From the sequence record MK250028.1: a DNA stretch of 64,000 bases; one strand, written 5' to 3'. Numbering within the stretch: position 1 is the stretch's first letter; each line of letters opens with the position of its first letter. The notes beneath the pieces are model-generated. The model did not search any database. It was not told the DNA's origin and saw only the letters and a program-made list of their open reading frames with translations. The translations under genes and the position numbers were made by a program. This document shows positions 1,771 through 44,785 of this stretch, one piece after another.

Positions 1771-1901
1771 TTAATAGATTTAATTTAGTTTACTTCTAAA
1801 TATAAAGAGATATATTCTAATATAGAGTATATCTCTTTTTTCATAAACTTAATTTTAATTTTAACATATAATATATAAAGATATAATATTTTTTATAATA
1901 A

Positions 1902-2300
1902 ATGGAAAAATTAAATTCATTCAAGGAACTGTTTACATGGAATAAAGATGAACAACAAGATTTGGAATTTGAAAATCTGAATCTTATAACTGCTGTTTAT
2001 TCTGCACAACGAATTGATTTGATACGGAGTGAATTTAAACGAACATATAAAGAATTAACAGATTTATTAGATATAAGGAAATCAAATGAATCGCTGAAAG
2101 CAAGGATTAATAATTTTAATTCAGAAGATTGGATACATAAAGTATATTCATTGATGAATGCGTCCGTAAAGAAATATGATGATTTAATGTATGCGATAAA
2201 TTTTCATAATATATTATTTCCTGATGAACCTGCATTAGGATTAGATGAAGATGAAATAAAAGTTATAAATCAAATAAAAGGAATAGAGTTTATTACATAA
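1902..2300 (+). CDS. hypothetical protein
   Basis: 132-aa ORF ending TAA, terminator hairpin downstream. Confidence 0.7.
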   Translation: MEKLNSFKELFTWNKDEQQDLEFENLNLITAVYSAQRIDLIRSEFKRTYKELTDLLDIRKSNESLKARINNFNSEDWIHKVYSLMNASVKKYDDLMYAINFHNILFPDEPALGLDEDEIKVINQIKGIEFIT

Positions 2301-2360
2301 TAAAAATGGGGATATAACAAATTGTATGTTATATCCCTTTACTTGTTAATAGTTATTTAA

Positions 2361-2612
2361 TCAAAAGATACAATGTAGTATTCCACCTATGCAGATTACC
2401 AATGTATATTTTAACATATCTTTGTGATTGCATACGTCACACTTTTCTGTTTGCATATGATGTACATAACAAGAGTGTACGATCATCGCTAAGATTGAAA
2501 ATGTAAATCCAGTTAACAAAGAAATTAATAACCATGCTATGAACATGATAGCATTCCCGTTATTTGTTTTTACATCATTCCAAACTTCCTTAAGTATTTC
2601 CAATATGTACAA
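2361..2612 (-). CDS. small membrane protein
   Basis: hydrophobic segments; start codon uncertain (TTG). Confidence 0.45.
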   Translation of the reverse strand: MYILEILKEVWNDVKTNNGNAIMFIAWLLISLLTGFTFSILAMIVHSCYVHHMQTEKCDVCNHKDMLKYTLVICIGGILHCIF

Positions 2613-2814
2613 GCCAAAAGTTATGAAGAACTATTTAACTGAATCAAATGTTAATCCCTTAAAGAAATTAACTAAATTTAAAAAAGAATTTAACATATCA
2701 AATTATAAATAACTATTTTTAGTATGTTATTAGTAAAACATACCTATATATTTATTAAACTATTTTACTTTATAATTATATAAACAATATGAAGTTAGAT
2801 TAATTTTAAATAAA

Positions 2815-3351
2815 ATGAAAGAACAAAGATATACAATAAAGGATGCAGAGGAAATGTCTTATAATGAAGATATTATCTGTTTTTGGAAACCATACGGAAT
2901 AAATGAAATAGGTCCACATGTATTGTGTCAGTGGTATAAGTCAATATTTAGTGATGATAAGAATACTTATTCTTGCACTGAACAATATATGATGTATCAG
3001 AAAGCTATTTTGTTTGGCGATGATGAAATTGCAAGGAAAATTCTTCAAGAAAAACGTCCAGATCAAATGAAGAAATACGGAAGACTTATTAAGAATTTCG
3101 ATGAAAAAGTTTGGAATGAAAATAAGTTTATGATTGTATATAATGGTAATTATCTTAAGTTCACGCAAAATAAGAAACTTAAGGATTATCTTAAATCTAC
3201 AGGAAATTCTATATTGGTAGAAGCATCTCCATATGATGCTGTATGGGGAGTAAAAATGTCAATGGATAATGACGATATTTTATATCCAGAAAAGTGGAAT
3301 GGACAGAATTTATTAGGATTTGCACTGATGCAAGTAAGAGATGATATTTAA
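2815..3351 (+). CDS. NADAR family protein (YbiA/DUF1768-like ADP-ribosyl hydrolase)
   Basis: motifs EQYMMYQKAILFGD, LVEASPYDAVWG and WNGQNLLGFALMQVR. Confidence 0.92.
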   Translation: MKEQRYTIKDAEEMSYNEDIICFWKPYGINEIGPHVLCQWYKSIFSDDKNTYSCTEQYMMYQKAILFGDDEIARKILQEKRPDQMKKYGRLIKNFDEKVWNENKFMIVYNGNYLKFTQNKKLKDYLKSTGNSILVEASPYDAVWGVKMSMDNDDILYPEKWNGQNLLGFALMQVRDDI

Positions 3352-3370
3352 TATTTAATTTTATATAACT

Positions 3371-3886
3371 ATGAATATACAAGAGATTTTAGGAGAGATT
3401 AAGAAATTATCTGATGATGATATTGTAAAGTTTAATAAGGAGTTTTCCACTTTTTATAAGCCATTTAAGAAGAAGGAAGATGAGATTAAAAAAGAGCAGA
3501 AAAAGAAAGAAGATGAATTGAAGCTTGTTCGTGTAAAAGAAATAGGTGATAAAATTTGTGAACTATATGAAATAAATGGATTTCCAGTTTCAAGTGTACA
3601 TAAGTGTAATGATGCACCTTACTCTACATATGAAGATTATGGTGGATATGTATTGGATGACTGTGATATAGAACCATATATTAAAAAAGTAGATGAGGAG
3701 ACGGATAAAGAATTAGATAAATTATTTAACGATTTTTATAATAATATGTCTGATAAAGAATATCTTAATGAGAAAAAAGAAGCTGATGATTTATATCCAG
3801 GTGATACAATATTTAACTTCTATATGAAAGGTGGAACATTTAAAAAAGTAATGGACAATGAAGTGGAATCTGTTATTACAGTTTAA
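3371..3886 (+). CDS. hypothetical protein
   Basis: 171-aa ORF in a tightly packed early gene run. Confidence 0.7.
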   Translation: MNIQEILGEIKKLSDDDIVKFNKEFSTFYKPFKKKEDEIKKEQKKKEDELKLVRVKEIGDKICELYEINGFPVSSVHKCNDAPYSTYEDYGGYVLDDCDIEPYIKKVDEETDKELDKLFNDFYNNMSDKEYLNEKKEADDLYPGDTIFNFYMKGGTFKKVMDNEVESVITV

Positions 3887-4163
3887 GAATTATATAAAAT
3901 ATAAAACACCTTGGAAATATTGTCAATATAATAAACAACTATATAAAAATGATAAATTCCGAATAGAATATTTTTGGAGAAGAGAAAATCATTTTGCGAT
4001 AGGTTTTTATTATGATGGAAATTTTCATACAGAAGTATGGTCTAATAATGAAAGTTGGTTTGTAAATAAAATATATATTAATTTTATATATGCATCATTT
4101 TTAATTGTTACAAAGAAAAAGTTATATTGTAAATATCCAGATGATTATTTTGATTTGAATTAA
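3858..4163 (+). CDS. hypothetical protein
   Basis: 101-aa ORF overlapping the previous gene. Confidence 0.6.
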   Translation: MKWNLLLQFKNYIKYKTPWKYCQYNKQLYKNDKFRIEYFWRRENHFAIGFYYDGNFHTEVWSNNESWFVNKIYINFIYASFLIVTKKKLYCKYPDDYFDLN

Positions 4164-4165
4164 TT

Positions 4166-4366
4166 ATGAAATTATATCAGATTTATACCAAAGGTAATTA
4201 TTGTAGTGGTGGATTTAATGAATCTTTTGATGAACCTATGGATGGTCCAGCATATAAAACAATTTTCACTACATATGAAAAAGCAAAAGAACATTTACCA
4301 GAAAAACATGGTGATAGATTTACAGGTTTTTCTGAGTATTATATAAAAGAAGTTGAAATAGAATGA
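4166..4366 (+). CDS. hypothetical protein
   Basis: 66-aa ORF, ATGA overlap with the next gene. Confidence 0.65.
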   Translation: MKLYQIYTKGNYCSGGFNESFDEPMDGPAYKTIFTTYEKAKEHLPEKHGDRFTGFSEYYIKEVEIE

Positions 4367-4731
4367 TTGATAATACGAAAGAATATATTGTATGTGCTGC
4401 TTATCTACAAACTAGAAATACTAGTAATAGACAAAATATGATAGATAAACAAGGTAAAGATCCAAAATCAATATATTATGAACCACATAATCAAGTATTT
4501 GATATGAGATTGGGGTTTAGACATCCTGATATTATATATCAATATGGTGATGAAATAAACAATAAAGAATCTGATGGTGGATTTATGACATCAAAAGGAA
4601 GATATGTAGGAAGAGTAGAAGCAATGAAAATAGCTTATGAATGTGGTCAAGTATCCAAGGAAAAAGCTATCAGGAATGATAAGTATATAAAGAATGGATA
4701 TTGGCCATTATATTCAGAAGATATTTATTAA
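4363..4731 (+). CDS. conserved phage hypothetical protein
   Basis: pattern GFRHPDII...GFMTSKGRYVGRVEAMKIA...LYSEDIY recalled from other phage hypotheticals. Confidence 0.7.
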   Translation: MIDNTKEYIVCAAYLQTRNTSNRQNMIDKQGKDPKSIYYEPHNQVFDMRLGFRHPDIIYQYGDEINNKESDGGFMTSKGRYVGRVEAMKIAYECGQVSKEKAIRNDKYIKNGYWPLYSEDIY

Positions 4732-4743
4732 TTTTAATACAAT

Positions 4744-4998
4744 ATGAAAAAGAATAAAATTACTATTGAACTATCAAATTCTGAAATTAATAGATTAACT
4801 AATCTGTTATTTAAAGGTACTGCATATGATGAAACTTATTATGATAAACGAACATGCACATTGGATGAAAAATTCAGAGAGAATTTTTGTCAGATGCTTG
4901 TAGATGGTTCAGAAAAATATAAAGATAAAAATATTAAAGTAACAACCTTTAATGGTATATTAAAAGATGTAGATAAAGATTATTACTTGTTTAATTAA
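4744..4998 (+). CDS. hypothetical protein
   Basis: 84-aa ORF in the operon-like run. Confidence 0.65.
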   Translation: MKKNKITIELSNSEINRLTNLLFKGTAYDETYYDKRTCTLDEKFRENFCQMLVDGSEKYKDKNIKVTTFNGILKDVDKDYYLFN

Positions 4999-5001
4999 AT
5001 T

Positions 5002-5310
5002 ATGAGTATGACATTAGATGAAGCTATTAAGCATGCAGATGAAGTATCAGAAACATGTGATAATAGAGATTGTGGATTAGAACATAAGCAACTTGCTAGT
5101 TGGTTGAGAGAACTTAAGGAATTAAGGAATAAACATATTCAAGATGAGTTAGAGAAAGATGCTACATTTTATGCAGATAAAACTATTTACGAAGGGAGTA
5201 TATATGGATTTCCATCAGGTGATGTTAGAGAGAAATATAATGCCGTAAAATGTGCATATAAAGAAGGATTCTGCGCATGTTTAAATAAAAATATTAATAC
5301 AAATGAGTGA
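5002..5310 (+). CDS. hypothetical protein
   Basis: MTLDEAIKHA...EHKQLASWLRELKELR helical phage hypothetical. Confidence 0.7.
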   Translation: MSMTLDEAIKHADEVSETCDNRDCGLEHKQLASWLRELKELRNKHIQDELEKDATFYADKTIYEGSIYGFPSGDVREKYNAVKCAYKEGFCACLNKNINTNE

Positions 5311-5614
5311 GATAAGAAAAGGATGCTATATGCATACATCATATAATGGTCCATGTGATGATGAGGAAACATGGATTTTCCCTGATGGATTTGAAGGTGT
5401 AGATGATGATACTTATTATGAAATTGAATATGATTATCATTCAGCAGCAGATCCTATGGATCAATCATGTACATATCATGTAACATCTATTAAACCTGTT
5501 TCTATATTGATGAAGAATGCTTATGAAATTATTCAGAAATATAAATATATGCAAAATCATATAGATGAGTTTGAAAAGTGGTTAAGTGACAATTATGAAA
5601 TTAAACGAATATGA
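5303..5614 (+). CDS. hypothetical protein
   Basis: 103-aa ORF overlapping its neighbours. Confidence 0.65.
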   Translation: MSEIRKGCYMHTSYNGPCDDEETWIFPDGFEGVDDDTYYEIEYDYHSAADPMDQSCTYHVTSIKPVSILMKNAYEIIQKYKYMQNHIDEFEKWLSDNYEIKRI

Positions 5615-5945
5615 ATTATGTAAAGCTTTCATTATGCCATGTTATTGGTATATCGAAGGTGAAGAACATGAAAAATTTTATGTTGATGAACAAACATGTG
5701 ATTGGTATAATTTCATAGAAAATGATGAGTTTAATAATAACGAAAAAGAAATACGTAAATGGTGGAAAATAATGTTATATAAACCATCAAATATAGAAAC
5801 AAAGGATCTTACAGAAGAACAATGTAAATGGTTGGTTAATGAGTGTTATCATGATATGATTAATATATATGATGATAAAGAAGATGATACAGATTATGAA
5901 AAATATGAATGGGATTTTAAAAAACATTGTATAAAAAAAGATTAA
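5586..5945 (+). CDS. hypothetical protein
   Basis: 119-aa ORF; exact start uncertain. Confidence 0.6.
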   Translation: MTIMKLNEYELCKAFIMPCYWYIEGEEHEKFYVDEQTCDWYNFIENDEFNNNEKEIRKWWKIMLYKPSNIETKDLTEEQCKWLVNECYHDMINIYDDKEDDTDYEKYEWDFKKHCIKKD

Positions 5946-5975
5946 AGATATTTTTCATATTTAAATTTTAATATG

Positions 5976-5983
5976 TAACTTTG
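5976..5983 (+). promoter_or_regulatory. Bacteroidetes primary-sigma -7 box (TAnnTTTG)
   Basis: ATGTAACTTTG upstream of 6009; variant of a motif seen 7 times in intergenic gaps. Confidence 0.6.
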
Positions 5984-6008
5984 AATTATAATTTTAATTT
6001 AATATTAT

Positions 6009-6239
6009 ATGAAATATCGTATTACAAAATCAGAAAAAGGTTATCGTGCTGAAATTGGTAAACATAATGCACGAAATGGTGTATTAGAATATATATCCAT
6101 TGAGAACGATAATAATTATTTGTGTAGTTGTGAAACTTATTATGAAACCGAGATTGATGCAATTGAAGCATGTAAGAAACATCATCATGAAAAGGGATAT
6201 GATAAATTACCTAAAGTAGTAGATGAGTTTGAACTTTAA
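6009..6239 (+). CDS. hypothetical protein
   Basis: 76-aa ORF downstream of a promoter motif. Confidence 0.7.
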   Translation: MKYRITKSEKGYRAEIGKHNARNGVLEYISIENDNNYLCSCETYYETEIDAIEACKKHHHEKGYDKLPKVVDEFEL

Positions 6240-6250
6240 ATTTATATATT

Positions 6251-6640
6251 ATGTGGTTAGCAAGGGATAAAGGCTTCGAATCATGCGGTAATGGATTTAT
6301 TCTTGGTGATGTTCATCTTTTTTCAAAGAAACCAAAACGTAAAATTAATAAAGATCGTAAGTGGGAGAAAGAACCATCTATATGGGATGGACATTGTGCA
6401 AAGATGAAGCTTAAATCGGATGAATATCCTGATTTAAAATGGGAAGATGAACCATTAGAAGTTGATTTAGATATTAATCATAATAGATGGGATTTAGATA
6501 TTTGTAAATATTTAACTGCTATTGAGAATATTGCAGGATGTTATGAAAATAAATTTACTAATGATAATCAAGGTTCAAAAATCTGTAATGAAATTTATAA
6601 TAAAGTAAAAGAGTTAAAACAATTATTAGTTTTAAAATAA
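6251..6640 (+). CDS. conserved phage hypothetical protein
   Basis: MWLARDK...LFSKKP...LKWEDEPLEV pattern. Confidence 0.7.
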   Translation: MWLARDKGFESCGNGFILGDVHLFSKKPKRKINKDRKWEKEPSIWDGHCAKMKLKSDEYPDLKWEDEPLEVDLDINHNRWDLDICKYLTAIENIAGCYENKFTNDNQGSKICNEIYNKVKELKQLLVLK

Positions 6641-6676
6641 GTTTAAGAATATCTTTCTTATTCCAATAAAAATATG

Positions 6677-6684
6677 TATCTTTG
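6677..6684 (+). promoter_or_regulatory. Bacteroidetes -7 box TATCTTTG
   Basis: ATATGTATCTTTGTA upstream of 6718. Confidence 0.7.
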
Positions 6685-6717
6685 TAATAGAGTTTAATAA
6701 CAATTAAAAGATATATT

Positions 6718-7182
6718 ATGGATAAGAAAGATATTCTTTATAATTTAAAGAAGGTTAATAAGTATATTGATTATAAAATAGGCGATTGGGTAGAAACATG
6801 TAACATGCTTCCAGGTATTGTACAAGAAATTCATAATTATTATGATCCAAGAAAAAATATGCAATGCTTTGTAGAAGATGTTATTATTTATTATCCACAT
6901 TATGCTATTGATAATCCAGATTATCATGGTGGTTCATCATGTTCAATTACAGGATGTGGTGTTCATCAGATTTCGCAGGAATATGTAAAGATATTATTTT
7001 CATTAGGTTATGATAAACTTGTTAATCTGTGGAATGATTATAAATTAAAGGATGATGAAATATCATGGGATGATTTTGTCAAGAAAGAATATGATAAACT
7101 TTCTGACGAAGAGAAATTAAATGGTATTATATTATTTAATATCGGCGAAGAATATTCACGAAAAATTAAAGATATAAAATAA
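6718..7182 (+). CDS. hypothetical protein
   Basis: 154-aa ORF. Confidence 0.7.
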   Translation: MDKKDILYNLKKVNKYIDYKIGDWVETCNMLPGIVQEIHNYYDPRKNMQCFVEDVIIYYPHYAIDNPDYHGGSSCSITGCGVHQISQEYVKILFSLGYDKLVNLWNDYKLKDDEISWDDFVKKEYDKLSDEEKLNGIILFNIGEEYSRKIKDIK

Positions 7183-7599
7183 ATGAATGATAATAAGTCA
7201 AATATAACGGGATTATATTTTGAAGATAATATGGCTGTTTTTAATAAAGCTGTAGTTTATCCTAAAAATTATAATCCTAAAACAGATTCAAAATTCATGC
7301 ATGATTTGGATTATACATCTGAATGGTGTGAACATTCTGAAGAGAGATTATTTTGGAATAATGATCTCATTGAGAATCCATTTATAACAAATGAATTTTA
7401 TTATGCAGAAATTAATCATCCTACAATGGGTAAAGCTATATATAGAAAACGAAAAAATGGTAAATATATATGGCAATTTGAAAATGAAAAAGATGTAAAG
7501 GTATCTATGAGATCATCATTTGGAAGTCAATATAAAGATATGATTAATGATGGTTATATTGTAATTAAGAAGGGACATAATAAAATTACATCAAATTAA
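7183..7599 (+). CDS. hypothetical protein
   Basis: 138-aa ORF abutting the previous stop. Confidence 0.7.
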   Translation: MNDNKSNITGLYFEDNMAVFNKAVVYPKNYNPKTDSKFMHDLDYTSEWCEHSEERLFWNNDLIENPFITNEFYYAEINHPTMGKAIYRKRKNGKYIWQFENEKDVKVSMRSSFGSQYKDMINDGYIVIKKGHNKITSN

Positions 7600-11742: not shown

Positions 11743-12196
11743 TTTTAAAACATTTATATATGCCGGTTTCTTTGTATCAGATGATGATAAGTAGAAACTT
11801 GAAATTGCATTTTGTGAGAATGTAGAAAATGGTGCTTCATATCTACAAGATTGGAAAGTGTATATTGATCACNNNNNNNNNNNNNNNNNNNNNNNNNNNN
11901 NNNNNNNNNNNNNNNNNNNNNNTATCATTAATTATTTGAAGGATACTCCGCCTGATACACATATGTATTTAACGGTAGATGGAATTGGTAGATATGAAAA
12001 TGTATTTGCGTTTAGAATTAAGAAAACAGAAGTAGTATCTATGTTGATTAAGAATAAACAACCACATATTACATGTGTATTAAATCCTGATACAAATAAA
12101 CCTGTTGATAGTAATAAGATTTGTAACTGGATTGATATTAATCCTATTAAGATAGATACAGTTTGTAAGATTTTTAACAAGAAGAAAAAGAAATAA
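11732..12196 (+). CDS. putative 2H phosphoesterase
   Basis: ATG at 11732 is in frame with the 11858 ORF through one TAG (11792); C-terminal PHIT...KPVDSNKICNW; first His (YIDH) runs into an N gap. Confidence 0.55.
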
Positions 12197-12198
12197 TT

Positions 12199-12921
12199 AT
12201 GAATACTTATGATTTTACAGATCCATTTGATTATGAAGAATATATGAAATTATTGAATAATTTCTTAGGTCCATCAGTTGAAGAGAAAAATAATATTATA
12301 TGTAATTCTCATTTTACACTACACCCAGTTAATTCTGATACTTATAATAAGTTTAAGGAATATCTTGAATATGAATATGATAAGAATACTTGTTTTTTTA
12401 TGCATATTTGTATTGATGGAAAAATTATAAATGATTCTGTTTATTTTTGTAGATTCGATTCTTATGATTATTTATATTCAAAGATAAAGGATTATAATAA
12501 GAAGAAACATTATTTTGAATTTTTCACTAAATGTGATATAGCGTCATATACAAAAGAAGAAGTTGATAAGTATAATGATGAATATGAGCGTTATCATTAT
12601 AGAGGAAAAAAACGAAAGGTTGGTGAGAAATATTTAAAGAAAACAGATGTTATTGTTAATCTTAAATCAGGTAAAGAAGTATCGTTTATTGAAATACCTA
12701 AGTATAATAGAGGATATATTGTATATGAGAAATATTATTCACCAAATGGTGAATATAAAATTATTTCTTTAGAAACAGGTAGAATAATTGAATATGATTA
12801 TGGTGATAAAATTGAAACAGATAATCATGTAATATTTAAAGCGAAACGTAATGATTATAATGATCCTGTTAAAGCTATAGTTCTAGATAAAAGTACAGGT
12901 GATTTTATTTATATTGATTAA
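12199..12921 (+). CDS. hypothetical protein
   Basis: 240-aa ORF. Confidence 0.7.
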   Translation: MNTYDFTDPFDYEEYMKLLNNFLGPSVEEKNNIICNSHFTLHPVNSDTYNKFKEYLEYEYDKNTCFFMHICIDGKIINDSVYFCRFDSYDYLYSKIKDYNKKKHYFEFFTKCDIASYTKEEVDKYNDEYERYHYRGKKRKVGEKYLKKTDVIVNLKSGKEVSFIEIPKYNRGYIVYEKYYSPNGEYKIISLETGRIIEYDYGDKIETDNHVIFKAKRNDYNDPVKAIVLDKSTGDFIYID

Positions 12922-42591: not shown

Positions 42592-42603
42592 TTAATTTAA
42601 ATG

Positions 42604-42632
42604 TAGACAATAATACATTATTAATATATAAT
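42604..42632 (+). promoter_or_regulatory. TAGACA-N17-TATAAT promoter upstream of the tRNA
   Basis: TAGACA 42604-42609 and TATAAT 42627-42632. Confidence 0.6.
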
Positions 42633-42691
42633 ATATATAAATTATTTGATTAAACAAATTAATGAAAAATTAAAAATAATTTATTAAAATG

Positions 42692-42722
42692 TAGACAATA
42701 TCAAATAAATAACATATAAATA
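42692..42722 (+). promoter_or_regulatory. TAGACA-N17-TATAAATA promoter upstream of the tRNA
   Basis: second tandem copy of the same motif. Confidence 0.6.
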
Positions 42723-42840
42723 ATATAATAATTAAAAACAAACGCTTATTTGATTTTCGTAGCGTTATGGATAAGTTGATAGAATTCAGAAATTCCTTTT
42801 AAGACGAATACACATGGAATGGTCCATTGGTGGAATTGGT

Positions 42841-43149
42841 AAAGTGTTTGCCTGCATTAATTTGTAGAATCCATCAAATTCAGTATCAGTTAGGATTAAA
42901 TTTTAAATATTAGTAGTTGCTATTGACGAAAATATTGACAATAATTAATTTATTGTTACCTGAGGAATAAGTGTTTATTTAATAAACAACGAAGAAGCTG
43001 ACTAAGAAAACCTAAGGTCTTCATAAGAAGATAGCTTGGTAATACTGAGCCAAGATAATTTTTAATTATAAGGTGCAGAGACTATACGGTGGGAACTAAT
43101 AGCAAGTTAAGATATAGTCCAAACTTTATAGAAATATAAAGAGTTTTTG
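42841..43149 (+). ncRNA. group I intron in the tRNA D-loop (309 nt, no ORF)
   Basis: P1 GGU-AAA/UUU-GCC with U.G at the 5' splice site, P10 GUGUUU/AGACAC, P7 GACUA 43080 / UAGUC 43115, terminal G 43149. Confidence 0.88.
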
Positions 43150-43164
43150 AGACACGAGGGACTT

Positions 43165-43512
43165 AAAAAATTTGAGTGCTCTATTGAGAAATCATAGAAG
43201 TAGAATCTCCCTAACGAAACGGAAGCCTAATTATTGGTGACAATAATGGTGGTGACGAACTCACTAAGTTGTTATAGAACGTTAATCTATATTAAATGTA
43301 AATTGAAGTGTTACAGCATAAATAGCGAAGAGACTATAGAGGAGATACCTAAGTTAAAGTACACGAAGAATAATCAATTAGATTATCACTATATATGAAG
43401 AGTATATAGTTTTATAATAAGGAATGCGCATTACTTTAATATGGTAGTAAAATAGTCCAGACTACAACATCTTAATAATTAAGATGGCTTGTATTAAAGC
43501 AAGAGTAGTAAG
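43165..43512 (+). ncRNA. group I intron in the tRNA anticodon, U34/A35 (348 nt, no ORF)
   Basis: P1 ACUU-AAA/UUU-GAGU with U.G at the splice site, P7 GACUA 43332 / UAGUC 43453, terminal G 43512. Confidence 0.9.
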
Positions 43513-43568
43513 AAAATCCCTTGGGCAGAAATGCCCGTGCCGGTTCGAATCCGGCATGGACTACATAT

Positions 43569-43607
43569 AAAAGTCTGATAATCAATAGCTTAGATTATCA
43601 GACTTTT
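43569..43607 (+). terminator. intrinsic terminator after the tRNA
   Basis: AAAAGTCTGATAATC/GATTATCAGACTTTT hairpin. Confidence 0.78.
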
Positions 43608-43648
43608 ATTTTTATATAGTATATAAAGTATAATTAATATTTTTAATA

Positions 43649-44785
43649 ATGATTACAATTACAGAACAATATATAAAAGAGTACCAAAAGAAATTAGATG
43701 ATATTTCTAAATCATTTGATTTAGAGAAACAACATATTATAGTTGAAGAATTATCAATTAAAGTTTCTGCACCAGATTTTTGGGATGATTTTGAAAGTGC
43801 GACATCAATCACAAAAGAACTTAATACAGCAAAAGAAAAGATAGATGATGTTGAACATATGAAAATGCTTATTGATGAGTTATCAACTGCATTAATGTAT
43901 TATAAGGAATTTGAAGGTAAAGATGAAGAAGAATATATAAATCTAGCGAATTCTGAATTAATTAGTGAATTCAGTAAATTTGAGGATAAGTATAGATTTG
44001 TTGATCCTACAGATTCATTAGGAGCTGTATTAGACATTAATGCAGGTGCAGGAGGAACAGAAGCAAATGATTGGGCAAATATGTTATTCCGTATGTATGA
44101 GATGTGGGCAAAATCAAATAATTATAAGTTTAAAGTTTTATATTATTCAGAAGGGGATAAAGTAGGTATTAAAAATGTATCTATTGAAATTACTGGTAAT
44201 AATGCGTATGGAACATTAAAAGGTGAAACCGGTGTTCATAGAATGGTAAGGGTTTCACCATATAATGCACAAGGTAAACGTATGACTAGTTTTGCTGCAG
44301 TTTCTGTTGTGCCTTTAGTAGATAATTCTATCAAGGTTGAAATTGACGATTCTAAATTAACAATAGATACATTTAGATCTTCTGGTGCTGGTGGTCAAAA
44401 TGTAAATAAGGTAGAATCTGGTGTACGTGTAAATTATATGTATACAGATCCAGATACAGGTGAAACAGAAAAAATTCAAGTTGCAAATACAGAAACAAGA
44501 GATCAACCAAAGAATAAAGAAAGAGCAATGCAAATTCTTAAATCTATTCTTTATAAGAAAGCATTGGATAAACAATTAGCTAAGAAAAAAGAAATAGAAG
44601 ATGCAAAACTTAAAAATGAATGGGGTGCACAAATTAGATCTTATGTATTTGATGATAAGCGAGTAAAAGATCATCGTACAGGTTATCAAACAACTGATGT
44701 TGATTCTGTTATGAATGGAAATATAAATGGTTTTATAGAATCATATAATAATTGGATTATTGAGCAAGAAAATAATAGACTTTAA
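43649..44785 (+). CDS. prfB: peptide chain release factor 2
   Basis: GGTEANDWA, GETGVHRMVRVSPY (SPF-type motif), FRSSGAGGQNVNK (GGQ), WGAQIRSY; no internal frameshift. Confidence 0.95.
   Translation: MITITEQYIKEYQKKLDDISKSFDLEKQHIIVEELSIKVSAPDFWDDFESATSITKELNTAKEKIDDVEHMKMLIDELSTALMYYKEFEGKDEEEYINLANSELISEFSKFEDKYRFVDPTDSLGAVLDINAGAGGTEANDWANMLFRMYEMWAKSNNYKFKVLYYSEGDKVGIKNVSIEITGNNAYGTLKGETGVHRMVRVSPYNAQGKRMTSFAAVSVVPLVDNSIKVEIDDSKLTIDTFRSSGAGGQNVNKVESGVRVNYMYTDPDTGETEKIQVANTETRDQPKNKERAMQILKSILYKKALDKQLAKKKEIEDAKLKNEWGAQIRSYVFDDKRVKDHRTGYQTTDVDSVMNGNINGFIESYNNWIIEQENNRL

Follow-up and report, generated by a model that had tools for sequence, protein, structure and literature searches.

The tRNA-Leu(UAA) gene of the giant gut phage Prevotella megaphage Lak-B, the phage's only tRNA gene for the leucine codon that it uses most, is present as three pieces separated by two group I-type introns, one of which lies in the D-loop, where no group I intron had been reported in the literature that we could search. 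The window analyzed here is a 64,000-nucleotide stretch of record MK250028.1 and is 100% identical to Lak-B1 and other Lak-B records. On the plus strand, joining 42821-42840 (20 nt), 43150-43164 (15 nt) and 43513-43563 (51 nt) produces an 86-nt sequence that ARAGORN calls as tRNA-Leu(taa) (86-87 nt), with a 7-bp acceptor stem, a 3-bp D-stem, G18-G19, a long variable arm and discriminator A73, as expected of a bacterial class II tRNA-Leu; deleting only one of the two inserts gives no tRNA. The observation made in the preliminary description, including its exact coordinates, is therefore confirmed. We consider this to be a real and very probably functional gene, although splicing itself has not been shown and neither mature nor aminoacylated tRNA was measured in infected cells. 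With regard to need for the tRNA, TTA makes up 57.7% and TTG 14.4% of Leu codons in the long ORFs of the window, and the only other Leu tRNA that ARAGORN finds in Lak-B1 is Leu(AAG). For the genome-wide tRNA scans of Lak-B1, positions 259000-275000, which match masked N stretches of the window, were left out.

Comparison with intronless alleles, which had been proposed as a check at the outset, provides evidence that the three pieces belong together by more than chance. Lak-A1, Lak-A2 and two IMG/VR contigs (loci L013 and L014) carry an uninterrupted tRNA-Leu(UAA) at the same place, and this reads ...GGAATAGGT|AGACACG...GACTT|AAAATC... straight across both proposed junctions and aligns with the joined exons over their whole length. 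Synteny was anchored on the neighbouring plus-strand gene at 43649-44785, which encodes a peptide chain release factor with PCRF and RF-1 domains (Pfam PF03462 at 2.6e-48 and PF00472 at 1.7e-30) and has orthologues at 92-100% identity beside both the intron-bearing and the intronless loci. The three-piece gene itself is kept in 9 Lak-B genomes, Lak-C1 and 4 IMG/VR contigs, and the splice-site U, terminal G, P1 and P10 are intact in all copies. Between Lak-B and Lak-C1, where the introns diverge by 2-7%, no substitution in a modelled helix breaks a base pair; seven pairs are changed on both sides (5 of the 7 acceptor pairs, one variable-arm pair at 43525/43534 and a G-C to A-U change in P9b of intron 2), and there are three one-sided, wobble-compatible changes, the T-stem for example changing from G-C to G-U. 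The only other event inside a stem is a single-T deletion in the T-run at P6a of intron 1. We cannot exclude that the coordinated acceptor-stem differences come from recombination between functional alleles rather than from selection after the introns arrived. The tRNA stems are maintained by compensatory change in relatives.

Exon 1 (42821-42840) contributes the 5′ strand of the acceptor, U8/G9, the 5′ strand of the D-stem (42830-42832) and the D-loop up to G18-G19-U; its acceptor bases covary with 43556-43562 between Lak-B and Lak-C1. The 15-nt micro-exon (43150-43164) supplies the rest of the D-loop (AGA), the 3′ strand of the D-stem (43153-43155), G26, the 5′ strand of the anticodon stem (43157-43161), C32, U33 and U34, and is identical in Lak-B, Lak-C1 and the locus L016. 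Exon 3 (43513-43563) comprises A35-A36, the rest of the anticodon loop, the 3′ strand of the anticodon stem (43517-43521), the long variable arm (43523-43536), the T arm (43539-43555), the 3′ strand of the acceptor (43556-43562) and discriminator A (43563); no CCA is encoded. Both inserts follow a U (42840 and 43164) and end in G (43149 and 43512), both carry the same P7 (GACUAU with AUAGUC, a bulged A and a closing G-C), and neither holds an open frame longer than 55 codons.

Intron 1 (42841-43149, 309 nt) is inserted in the D-loop. Its P1 (42838-42843/42847-42852) pairs GGU|AAA with UUUGCC and places U42840.G42850 at the splice site; the U/G rule leaves only this one cut that restores GGUAGAC. 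The guide at 42844-42849 (GUGUUU) forms a P10 of 6 out of 6 pairs with the first six bases of the micro-exon (AGACAC, 43150-43155). Checked base by base, the remaining elements are P2 (42853-42856/42863-42866), P3 (42870-42875/43088-43093), an AAA J3/4, P4 (42879-42885/43043-43049), a branched peripheral insert at about 42886-43009, P5/P5a (43010-43040), P6/P6a (43049-43074), P7 (43080-43085/43114-43119, with bulged A43079 and G43078-C43120), P8 (43094-43097/43105-43108) and P9 (43124-43141, with a GAAA loop). The P3/P7 pseudoknot and the other core helices, like P1, P10 and P2, are perfect on the sequence, and the classical R and S consensus strings (GUGCAGAGACUAUA and AAGAUAUAGUCC) are present. 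Rfam Intron_gpI (RF00028) matches 42967-43141 at 40.5 bits, E 1.1e-8 in a 1-kb search; as this is below the gathering score of 50, and as the whole-window run at the gathering threshold listed nothing, the match leaves membership undecided by this criterion. The model alignment mis-places P3 and P4 because of the 125-nt insert. Covariation also does not settle the matter, since only near-identical copies exist (97.7-100%): all 7 Lak-B/Lak-C1 differences lie in the peripheral insert or the T-run at P6a, outside the catalytic core, which fits constraint but is not covariation. We found intron 1 only in Lak-B/C-type phages. A 17-mer from its core matched only Lak-B/C loci plus two chance matches in IMG/VR, and BLAST of the intron against 2.9 Mb of retrieved loci found only three known distant phage introns; three phage loci with DNA similarity to intron 1 (Fnu1, phage G and an Enterocloster phage) gave no Intron_gpI match.

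Intron 2 (43165-43512, 348 nt) lies between U34 and A35. Its P1 (43161-43167/43171-43177) pairs ACUU|AAA with UUUGAGU, with U43164.G43174 at the splice site and the guide GAG at 43174-43176. The other elements, also checked base by base, are P2 (43180-43184/43194-43198), P3 (43205-43210/43341-43346), P4 (43215-43220/43252-43257), P5 (43225-43250, with a GUGA loop), P6/P6a (43268-43317), P7 (43332-43337/43452-43457, with bulged A43331 and G43330-C43458), P8 (43347-43361/43432-43445), P9.0 (43461-43465/43505-43509), P9a (43469-43485) and P9b (43488-43503). While P5, P6 and P6a are clear, P4 is weak, with 4 of 6 pairs and two purine-purine mismatches, and the P4-P6 domain is shorter than in most family members; P4 is better in relatives (6 of 6 in Lak-A, 5-6 of 6 in others, judged by eye), so that for this domain the evidence points neither way. 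Intron 2 belongs to a large, unannotated family of phage tRNA introns with at least 46 distinct cores in IMG/VR. In these, P7 pairs in 43-46 of 46 cores at each position, with C-G/G-U/A-U/U-G and U-A/C-G alternations, and the inner P8 helix pairs in 43-45 of 46, with many two-sided changes. In P9.0, 4 of the 5 modelled pairs hold in all 26 cores tested, with C-G/U-A/U-G alternation at one of them, and the outermost holds in 16 of 26. P3 is invariant because it served as the search anchor. The guide triplet follows the host exon (CUU/GAG, CAU/GUG, UCU/GGA, ACU/GGU). At least 20 family members sit after nt 34 of phage tRNA-Leu(UAA) genes with an intact D-arm, and others are found in tRNA-Arg, Lys and Met genes and in a crAss-like primase gene.

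The preliminary description had named failure of covariance models to align either insert to the group I core as grounds for rejecting its reading, and on this point the outcome is mixed. Intron 1 is aligned below threshold, as described above, whereas intron 2 gives no RF00028 match at E up to 10, whether searched alone or within the locus. There was likewise no Intron_gpI match in Lak-C1, Lak-A and crAss loci or in eight loci of the intron 2 family, and a compact relative scored only 15.7 bits (E 0.11). We attribute this to a limit of the model, none of whose 12 seeds were bacterial (Williams 2020 preprint); intron 2 is supported by family covariation instead. Minimum-free-energy folding, which cannot show the pseudoknotted core, gave z-scores of only -1.6 and -1.7 for the two introns. 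Absence of exon-junction reads had also been specified beforehand as a refuting result; contigs from three metatranscriptome studies cover the locus only in unspliced form and none carries the exon joints. We take this as uninformative rather than as evidence against splicing, as the contigs could be DNA carry-over and cannot show rare or short products. The core interpretation, that of one tRNA-Leu(UAA) gene with two ORF-less group I-type introns and a 15-nt micro-exon, is supported, having survived every comparative test that we could run.

We favor, with good but not complete confidence, a scenario in which this is the working tRNA-Leu(UAA) gene of Lak-B, transcribed as a precursor of about 750 nt from which the mature 86-nt tRNA is made only after two ORF-less group I ribozymes remove themselves. 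In this view, the guide GAG of intron 2 pairs with exon CUU, and the anticodon stem formed between the micro-exon and exon 3 holds these two exons together, while the guide GCC of intron 1 pairs with GGU and the 3-bp D-stem bridges exon 1 and the micro-exon. Each intron would therefore lie in a hairpin loop of the cloverleaf closed by a tRNA stem. It had been suggested that use of the micro-exon by both introns could order splicing or act as a timing switch. However, the introns use non-overlapping ends of the micro-exon (bases 1-6 for P10 of intron 1 and the last 3-4 bases, 43161-43164, for P1 of intron 2), so they can probably splice independently and in either order; nothing in the sequence forces an order, and the timing switch remains a guess that was not tested. 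Intron 2 is an old, widespread phage tRNA intron and intron 1 is most likely a later insertion into the highly conserved GGU/AGACAC sequence in the common ancestor of the Lak-B and Lak-C lineages. Our sequence comparisons demonstrate the gene structure, the homology, the covariation and the conservation, whereas self-splicing (guanosine dependence was not assayed), independence of the two reactions and the order of acquisition are inferred from them. A search for one-intron intermediates with the exon 2 pattern in IMG/VR and in metagenomes returned at least 233 hits, all of them uninterrupted genes except Lak-B itself and one truncated contig, for which pattern searches of IMG/VR and of genomes and a search with the neighbouring protein found nothing longer.

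An alternative that we consider unlikely is that only intron 2 is an autonomous ribozyme and that intron 1 is degenerate, depends on a helper (a phage or host protein, or the prior folding of intron 2) or is removed by another route. In keeping with this, the exon side of P1 in intron 1 has only 3 pairs, the branched insert of about 125 nt between P4 and P5 is unusual and left the Rfam alignment without a P4 5′ strand, no relatives are available for covariation, and exon 1 GGUGGA (42829-42834) can, by inference from the sequence, compete with the 3′ strand of P3 for UCCAUC. On the other hand, all core pairings are perfect, core positions are invariant between lineages while the peripheral insert varies, and three-pair P1 exon sides are the rule in the intron 2 family and occur in the self-splicing Azoarcus intron. 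It is somewhat less likely still that the gene is dead, having been hit in the Lak-B/C lineage by two mobile elements that no longer splice or never did, with the phage relying on the host's tRNA-Leu(UAA). The lack of spliced RNA, the sub-threshold or absent Rfam scores, the weak P4 of intron 2 and the existence of intronless sister alleles (so that the interrupted state is not obligatory) are consistent with this possibility, but retention of the three-piece gene, the absence of pair-breaking substitutions alongside seven two-sided changes, and its status as the only Leu(UAA) gene in a genome where TTA is the main Leu codon argue against it. Chance resemblance or mis-assembly, for which there is nothing beyond the fact that these are metagenome-assembled genomes, is refuted by the same structure in 10 independently curated Lak genomes and separate IMG/VR assemblies, by contigs from other public runs that span exon-intron boundaries and by the exact match of the intronless alleles to the joined exons at both junctions.

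There is precedent for much of this arrangement, and bacterial tRNA group I introns had been put forward as single insertions in the anticodon loop; only the position of intron 1 is new in this respect. Intron 2 interrupts the same tRNA at the same bond (CUU/AAAA) as the intron of cyanobacterial and plastid tRNA-Leu(UAA) (class Leu.3Ug of Williams 2020), likewise with U-1 in a U.G pair, a terminal G and no ORF, but it sits in a phage, is not recognised by Intron_gpI and belongs to a phage-borne family that extends to other genes; shared descent with the cyanobacterial intron was not tested. Other bacterial tRNA introns (Azoarcus tRNA-Ile, Agrobacterium tRNA-Arg and cyanobacterial tRNA-fMet, among 21 settings in Williams 2020) are also small ORF-less ribozymes with short P1 helices and U-1/terminal G boundaries. 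All described settings lie in the anticodon loop, although that survey only tested anticodon-loop sites, and no described gene carries two. Group I introns in the T-loop of tmRNA genes are a precedent for another loop of a tRNA-like fold, but the host is tmRNA and the intron is single. Several self-splicing introns in one phage gene are common in large gut phages (nrdD of Lak-B1, terL and nrdD of Jug phage; Twort orf142 is a further case), but those hosts are protein genes with long exons and often intron-borne endonucleases. Archaeal tRNA genes may have up to three introns, including at D-loop sites, but these are short bulge-helix-bulge elements removed by a protein endonuclease and ligase, and a 2014 review lists multiple-intron tRNAs for Archaea only. 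The gene extends where group I ribozymes are known to reside inside a tRNA, which in the literature that we could search is reported only for the anticodon loop, plus the T-loop of tmRNA, and a 15-nt exon shared by two ribozymes is a compact natural system that could be used to study how neighbouring ribozymes and a folding tRNA body influence each other.

The suggestion that standard tRNA finders would probably miss this gene is backed by our tool results and one paper. ARAGORN in default mode finds no tRNA in the whole window, and in intron mode it calls the locus as Leu(GAG) with a single 649-nt intron, a model that we rejected because it conflicts with the intronless alleles; tRNAscan-SE is stated not to be designed for group I introns (PMC8450103). 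Devoto et al. 2019 state that Lak tRNAs contain introns, but these "enigmatic" inserts of about 90-140 nt are in Tyr/Phe/Gly/Thr genes, were found with tRNAscan-SE in eukaryote mode and were left unclassified after an Rfam test. For Lak-B that paper lists one tRNA intron (Tyr) and one Leu tRNA, and the split Leu(UAA) gene is not in its tables. tRNA inventories of large phages are thus under-counted, and with a whole family of phage tRNA introns escaping Rfam, this bears on codon-usage and recoding arguments that rest on which tRNAs a phage carries.

A more speculative possibility, which we regard as improbable but which would be of considerable interest if true, is that Lak megaphages put key adaptors of their own translation behind ribozymes. 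In addition to the Leu(UAA) gene, the Lak-B1 tRNA with anticodon CUA, which lies outside this window and would read the recoded TAG, carries a group I-type intron of the same family. Since splicing is GTP- and Mg2+-dependent, its rate could set when, or in which physiological state of the host, phage-biased codons and TAG become readable, in which case the introns would act as regulators rather than passengers.

With regard to the surroundings of the gene, a 267-aa ORF lies next to the intronless alleles; it had only zinc-finger matches in Pfam and PDB and none in PHROGs. Directly after the tRNA in Lak-B, a hairpin followed by a T-run (43571-43617, plus strand) is probably the intrinsic terminator of the tRNA transcription unit. 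This is an inference from the sequence; a consensus scan did not list the hairpin because its stem is AT-rich, but the stem is kept in Lak-C1 with changes on both sides (AATC/GATT to AAC/GTT).

The stretch 42700-43700 is 100% identical to Prevotella phage Lak-B1, B2, B5 and B9, 99.8-99.9% identical to the other Lak-B genomes and 91.7% identical to Lak-C1; the window as a whole is 26% G+C. ARAGORN finds no tRNA in the window, in keeping with the expectation of the preliminary description that standard tRNA finders would probably miss this gene. However, when 42821-42840, 43150-43164 and 43513-43563 were joined, the resulting 86-nt sequence was folded by ARAGORN as tRNA-Leu(UAA) with a 7-bp acceptor stem, a 3-bp D-stem, an 11-nt D-loop, a long variable arm and discriminator A, and removing either insert alone gave no tRNA. 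Both inserts follow a U and end in G and, if the intron must follow a U and end in G, each junction has only one cut that restores the tRNA sequence.

Comparison with intronless alleles in related phages had been put forward in advance as a way of checking the observation, and this comparison provided independent proof of the junctions. We used the next gene downstream (43649-44785), which encodes a release factor with PCRF and RF-1 domains that is described as RF2 in the Lak papers, as a synteny anchor to recover related loci. Three IMG/VR contigs are Lak-B-like and one (L016) is Lak-C1-like, and all four carry both inserts. In contrast, two IMG/VR contigs (L013 and L014) and the Lak-A1/A2 loci (L388 and L389) share the same upstream sequence at about 93% identity but carry an uninterrupted tRNA-Leu(UAA) that ARAGORN finds directly. 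That gene reads GGAATAGGT-AGACACG and GACTT-AAAATC across the two positions where Lak-B is interrupted. The observation of a tRNA gene in three pieces therefore holds, and the three-exon reading is right to the base. We also found that in every intronless allele a 267-aa ORF with two C2HC-type zinc fingers (L388 695-1498 in Lak-A2, and the same gap in L013 and L014) sits between tRNA-Leu and the release-factor gene, while in the two-intron alleles this gap is only 85 nt (between 43563 and 43649 in the window) and the ORF is absent. It is possible that this ORF is a free-standing homing endonuclease whose target the introns disrupt, although no nuclease domain was recognized.

There is evidence that the gene is under selection. 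Lak-B and Lak-C1 differ at 5 of the 7 acceptor pairs and every one of these is changed on both sides (GGUCCAU/AUGGACU against GGCGAGG/CCUCGCU); in addition, one variable-arm pair changes G-C to A-U and one T-stem pair changes G-C to G-U. One caveat is that the introns are more alike (93-98%) than the acceptor stems, and the stem differences may therefore reflect recombination between functional alleles rather than stepwise compensation. In intron 2, P9b changes G-C to A-U, P9a changes U-A to U-G and P5 changes G-U to A-U, and everything else falls in loops or in the peripheral P8 extension. In intron 1, all seven differences fall in the peripheral insert (42905-42980) or in the T-run at P6a, and contigs from other public runs vary at the same peripheral positions. 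No core position of either intron differs.

Failure of covariance models to align either insert to the group I core had been named beforehand as a result that would refute the two-intron reading, and here the two inserts behaved differently. For intron 1 (42841-43149), Rfam Intron_gpI aligned 42967-43141 at 40.5 bits (E 1.1e-8), which is below the gathering score of 50, and the hit is accordingly absent from the search of the whole window; intron 2 (43165-43512) was not detected by Rfam. The model alignment of intron 1 left P4 without a 5' strand and gave a poor P3, and we therefore re-derived the core by hand and checked every pair by script. In this structure P1 is formed by GGU followed across the splice site by AAA, pairing with UUUGCC (U42840.G42850); P10 is formed by AGACAC with GUGUUU (6 pairs), P2 by UGCA with UGUA and P3 by UCCAUC with GGUGGG; J3/4 is AAA; P4 is formed by UUCAGUA with UACUGAG; P5/P5a is a hairpin and P6/P6a is present; P7 is formed by GACUAU with AUAGUC and has a bulged A and a closing G-C; P8 is formed by AACU with AGUU; P9 is a GAAA-capped hairpin; and the 3' end is G43149. 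A branched insert of about 125 nt lies between P4 and P5. The insert holds no ORF. The insertion point of intron 1 is one base after the conserved G18-G19 of the D-loop.

Outside Lak-B/C we found only weak DNA similarity to intron 1, namely to intron-like regions next to homing-endonuclease genes in Fusobacterium phage Fnu1 (nrdD), Bacillus phage G (dnaE-like) and Enterocloster phages, and the core 17-mer occurs in IMG/VR only in Lak-B/C. There may be a second case of a D-loop intron, as a 1014-nt metagenome contig (JGI Ga0326510_1077784; L377 = L390, positions 1-110) begins 25 nt upstream of position 21 of another tRNA-Leu(UAA), and in this contig non-tRNA sequence ending in G abuts AGACACG, the same D-loop site as that of intron 1. 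The contig is cut off and could not be extended; the anticodon loop of its tRNA is uninterrupted. Group I-like elements are also found elsewhere in Lak-B1, where the anaerobic ribonucleotide reductase gene (nrdD; 161800-167200, minus strand; L136 about 1800-7200, and L007-L010) is broken up by several of them, together with HNH and GIY-YIG endonuclease ORFs and an intein-like domain.

Although Rfam does not detect intron 2, this intron has DNA relatives at another locus in Lak-A, between the two halves of the primase gene of the crAss-like phages cr116_1 and IAS virus (L004 and L005), and in many IMG/VR contigs that were found through a 16-mer of its P3'/P8 region, about 69 of which also carry the matching P3 5' strand. 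By cutting after a U and after the conserved 3' motif, ARAGORN recovered complete tRNAs from at least 30 of these loci. At least 20 are tRNA-Leu(UAA) interrupted after nt 34 with an intact D-arm, and the others are tRNA-Arg(UCU), Lys(UUU) and Met(CAU); examples among the IMG/VR loci L020-L122 are L033, L044, L058, L112 and L116 (Leu), L048 (Arg), L109 (Lys) and L022 (Met). Intron 2 belongs to a large family of introns in phage tRNA genes that Rfam does not detect. Across 46 distinct cores and counted per pair position, P7 is paired in 43-46 of 46 cores, with C-G/G-U/A-U/U-G and U-A/C-G alternations, and inner P8 is paired in 43-45 of 46, with many two-sided changes; P9.0 is paired in 26 of 26 cores at 4 positions and in 16 of 26 at the outermost, with C-G/U-A/U-G alternation. 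Furthermore, the three guide bases follow the exon (CUU/GAG, CAU/GUG, UCU/GGA and ACU/GGU). A guide that tracks the exon, a P3/P7 pseudoknot and a terminal G are the signature of group I splicing. In Lak-B the helices check base by base, apart from a weak P4 with 4 of 6 pairs, and the Lak-B copy, at 348 nt, is a reduced member of a family that is mostly 470-600 nt long.

Some members of this family have features of their own. In L044, L046, L049, L053, L056, L081 and L095, a tRNA-like sequence (GGCGGAATTGGTATACGG...GGGTTCGAATCCC) lies inside the 3' domain of the intron, about 30-130 nt after the P7 3' strand, and the Rfam tRNA model hits L046 2078-2182 at 34 bits; this recalls the 'intron that may encode a tRNA' of the Lak paper. 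The Lak-A copy (L002 about 1395-1880 in Lak-A2, and L003 in Lak-A1) lies in an odd tRNA-like gene that has acceptor AGCTTAG/CTAAGCT and a normal T arm but no recognizable D-arm, and that ARAGORN does not call. Lak-B1 itself has a third group I-type tRNA intron outside the window (record MK250020, 412033-412351; locus L148 about 12033-12351). Cutting after U412067 and after G412312 (245 nt) gives a 73-nt tRNA with anticodon CUA, which would read the TAG that Lak phages recode. Here the guide GGA pairs with exon UCU and the core resembles that of intron 2, but Rfam Intron_gpI scores only 15.7 bits, and the default ARAGORN run finds no CUA tRNA in Lak-B1.

The interpretation offered in the preliminary description, that of a single tRNA-Leu(UAA) interrupted by two group I introns around a 15-nt exon, is supported. 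Our analysis makes the gene structure certain and the assignment to group I strong for both introns, whereas function is very likely but unproven and the account of splicing that follows is inference. The most likely scenario is that each intron lies in a hairpin loop of the cloverleaf that is closed by a tRNA stem, with the D-stem (42830-42832 with 43153-43155) closing the loop of intron 1 and the anticodon stem (43157-43161 with 43517-43521) closing that of intron 2. Exon pairing in the anticodon stem is required for splicing of the Anabaena tRNA-Leu intron, and the same logic would apply to both loops here. It had also been suggested that use of the micro-exon by both introns might order splicing or act as a timing switch. 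Intron 1 uses micro-exon bases 1-6 (P10) and intron 2 uses the last 3-4 bases (P1); the two do not compete, so an obligatory order is not implied. One possible interference is that exon 1 GGUGGA (42829-42834) nearly repeats the P3 3' strand of intron 1, GGUGGG (43088-43093), and could therefore pair with the P3 5' strand UCCAUC (42870-42875) in the precursor, which makes it either a possible folding competitor or chance.

Exon-junction sequences in metatranscriptomes had likewise been proposed as a test of splicing. Public runs that contain the stretch include metatranscriptomes, and their contigs span exon-intron boundaries unspliced, with none showing the exon joints. Contigs cannot show short or rare products and DNA carry-over is possible, and splicing is therefore neither shown nor refuted by these data. 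With regard to the need for the tRNA, TTA is 57.7% and TTG 14.4% of Leu codons in 40 long ORFs of the window. In Lak-B1, ARAGORN finds 30 uninterrupted tRNAs, which is the number given for B1 in the Lak paper, and the only Leu species among them is Leu(AAG); the split gene is therefore the phage's only Leu(UAA). The motif AATGTAGACAAT occurs twice upstream of the tRNA gene (42600-42612 and 42689-42701) and may be a promoter element: the first copy is part of an 11-of-12 sigma-70-like match (TAGACA-17-TATAAT) and the second is conserved in Lak-A2 and L013.

The position of intron 2 is classical, whereas the position of intron 1 and the arrangement of two ribozymes around a 15-nt exon are new. 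Bacterial tRNA group I introns are described only in the anticodon loop, in 21 settings, although that survey tested only anticodon-loop sites, and tmRNA genes carry one in the T-loop. A 2014 review lists multiple-intron tRNAs for Archaea only, and tRNAscan-SE is not designed for group I introns. Our literature searches, which did not extend to subscription journals, found no report of a D-loop group I intron or of two group I introns in one tRNA. The Lak genome paper reports short 'enigmatic' tRNA introns and, for Lak-B, lists one intron (Tyr) and one Leu tRNA, with no mention of group I. At Lak-B1 129706-129921, ARAGORN in intron mode calls a tRNA with a 141-nt insert whose sequence matches the 'enigmatic' Tyr(GTA) intron printed in Table S6 of that paper, and this insert shows no group I features.
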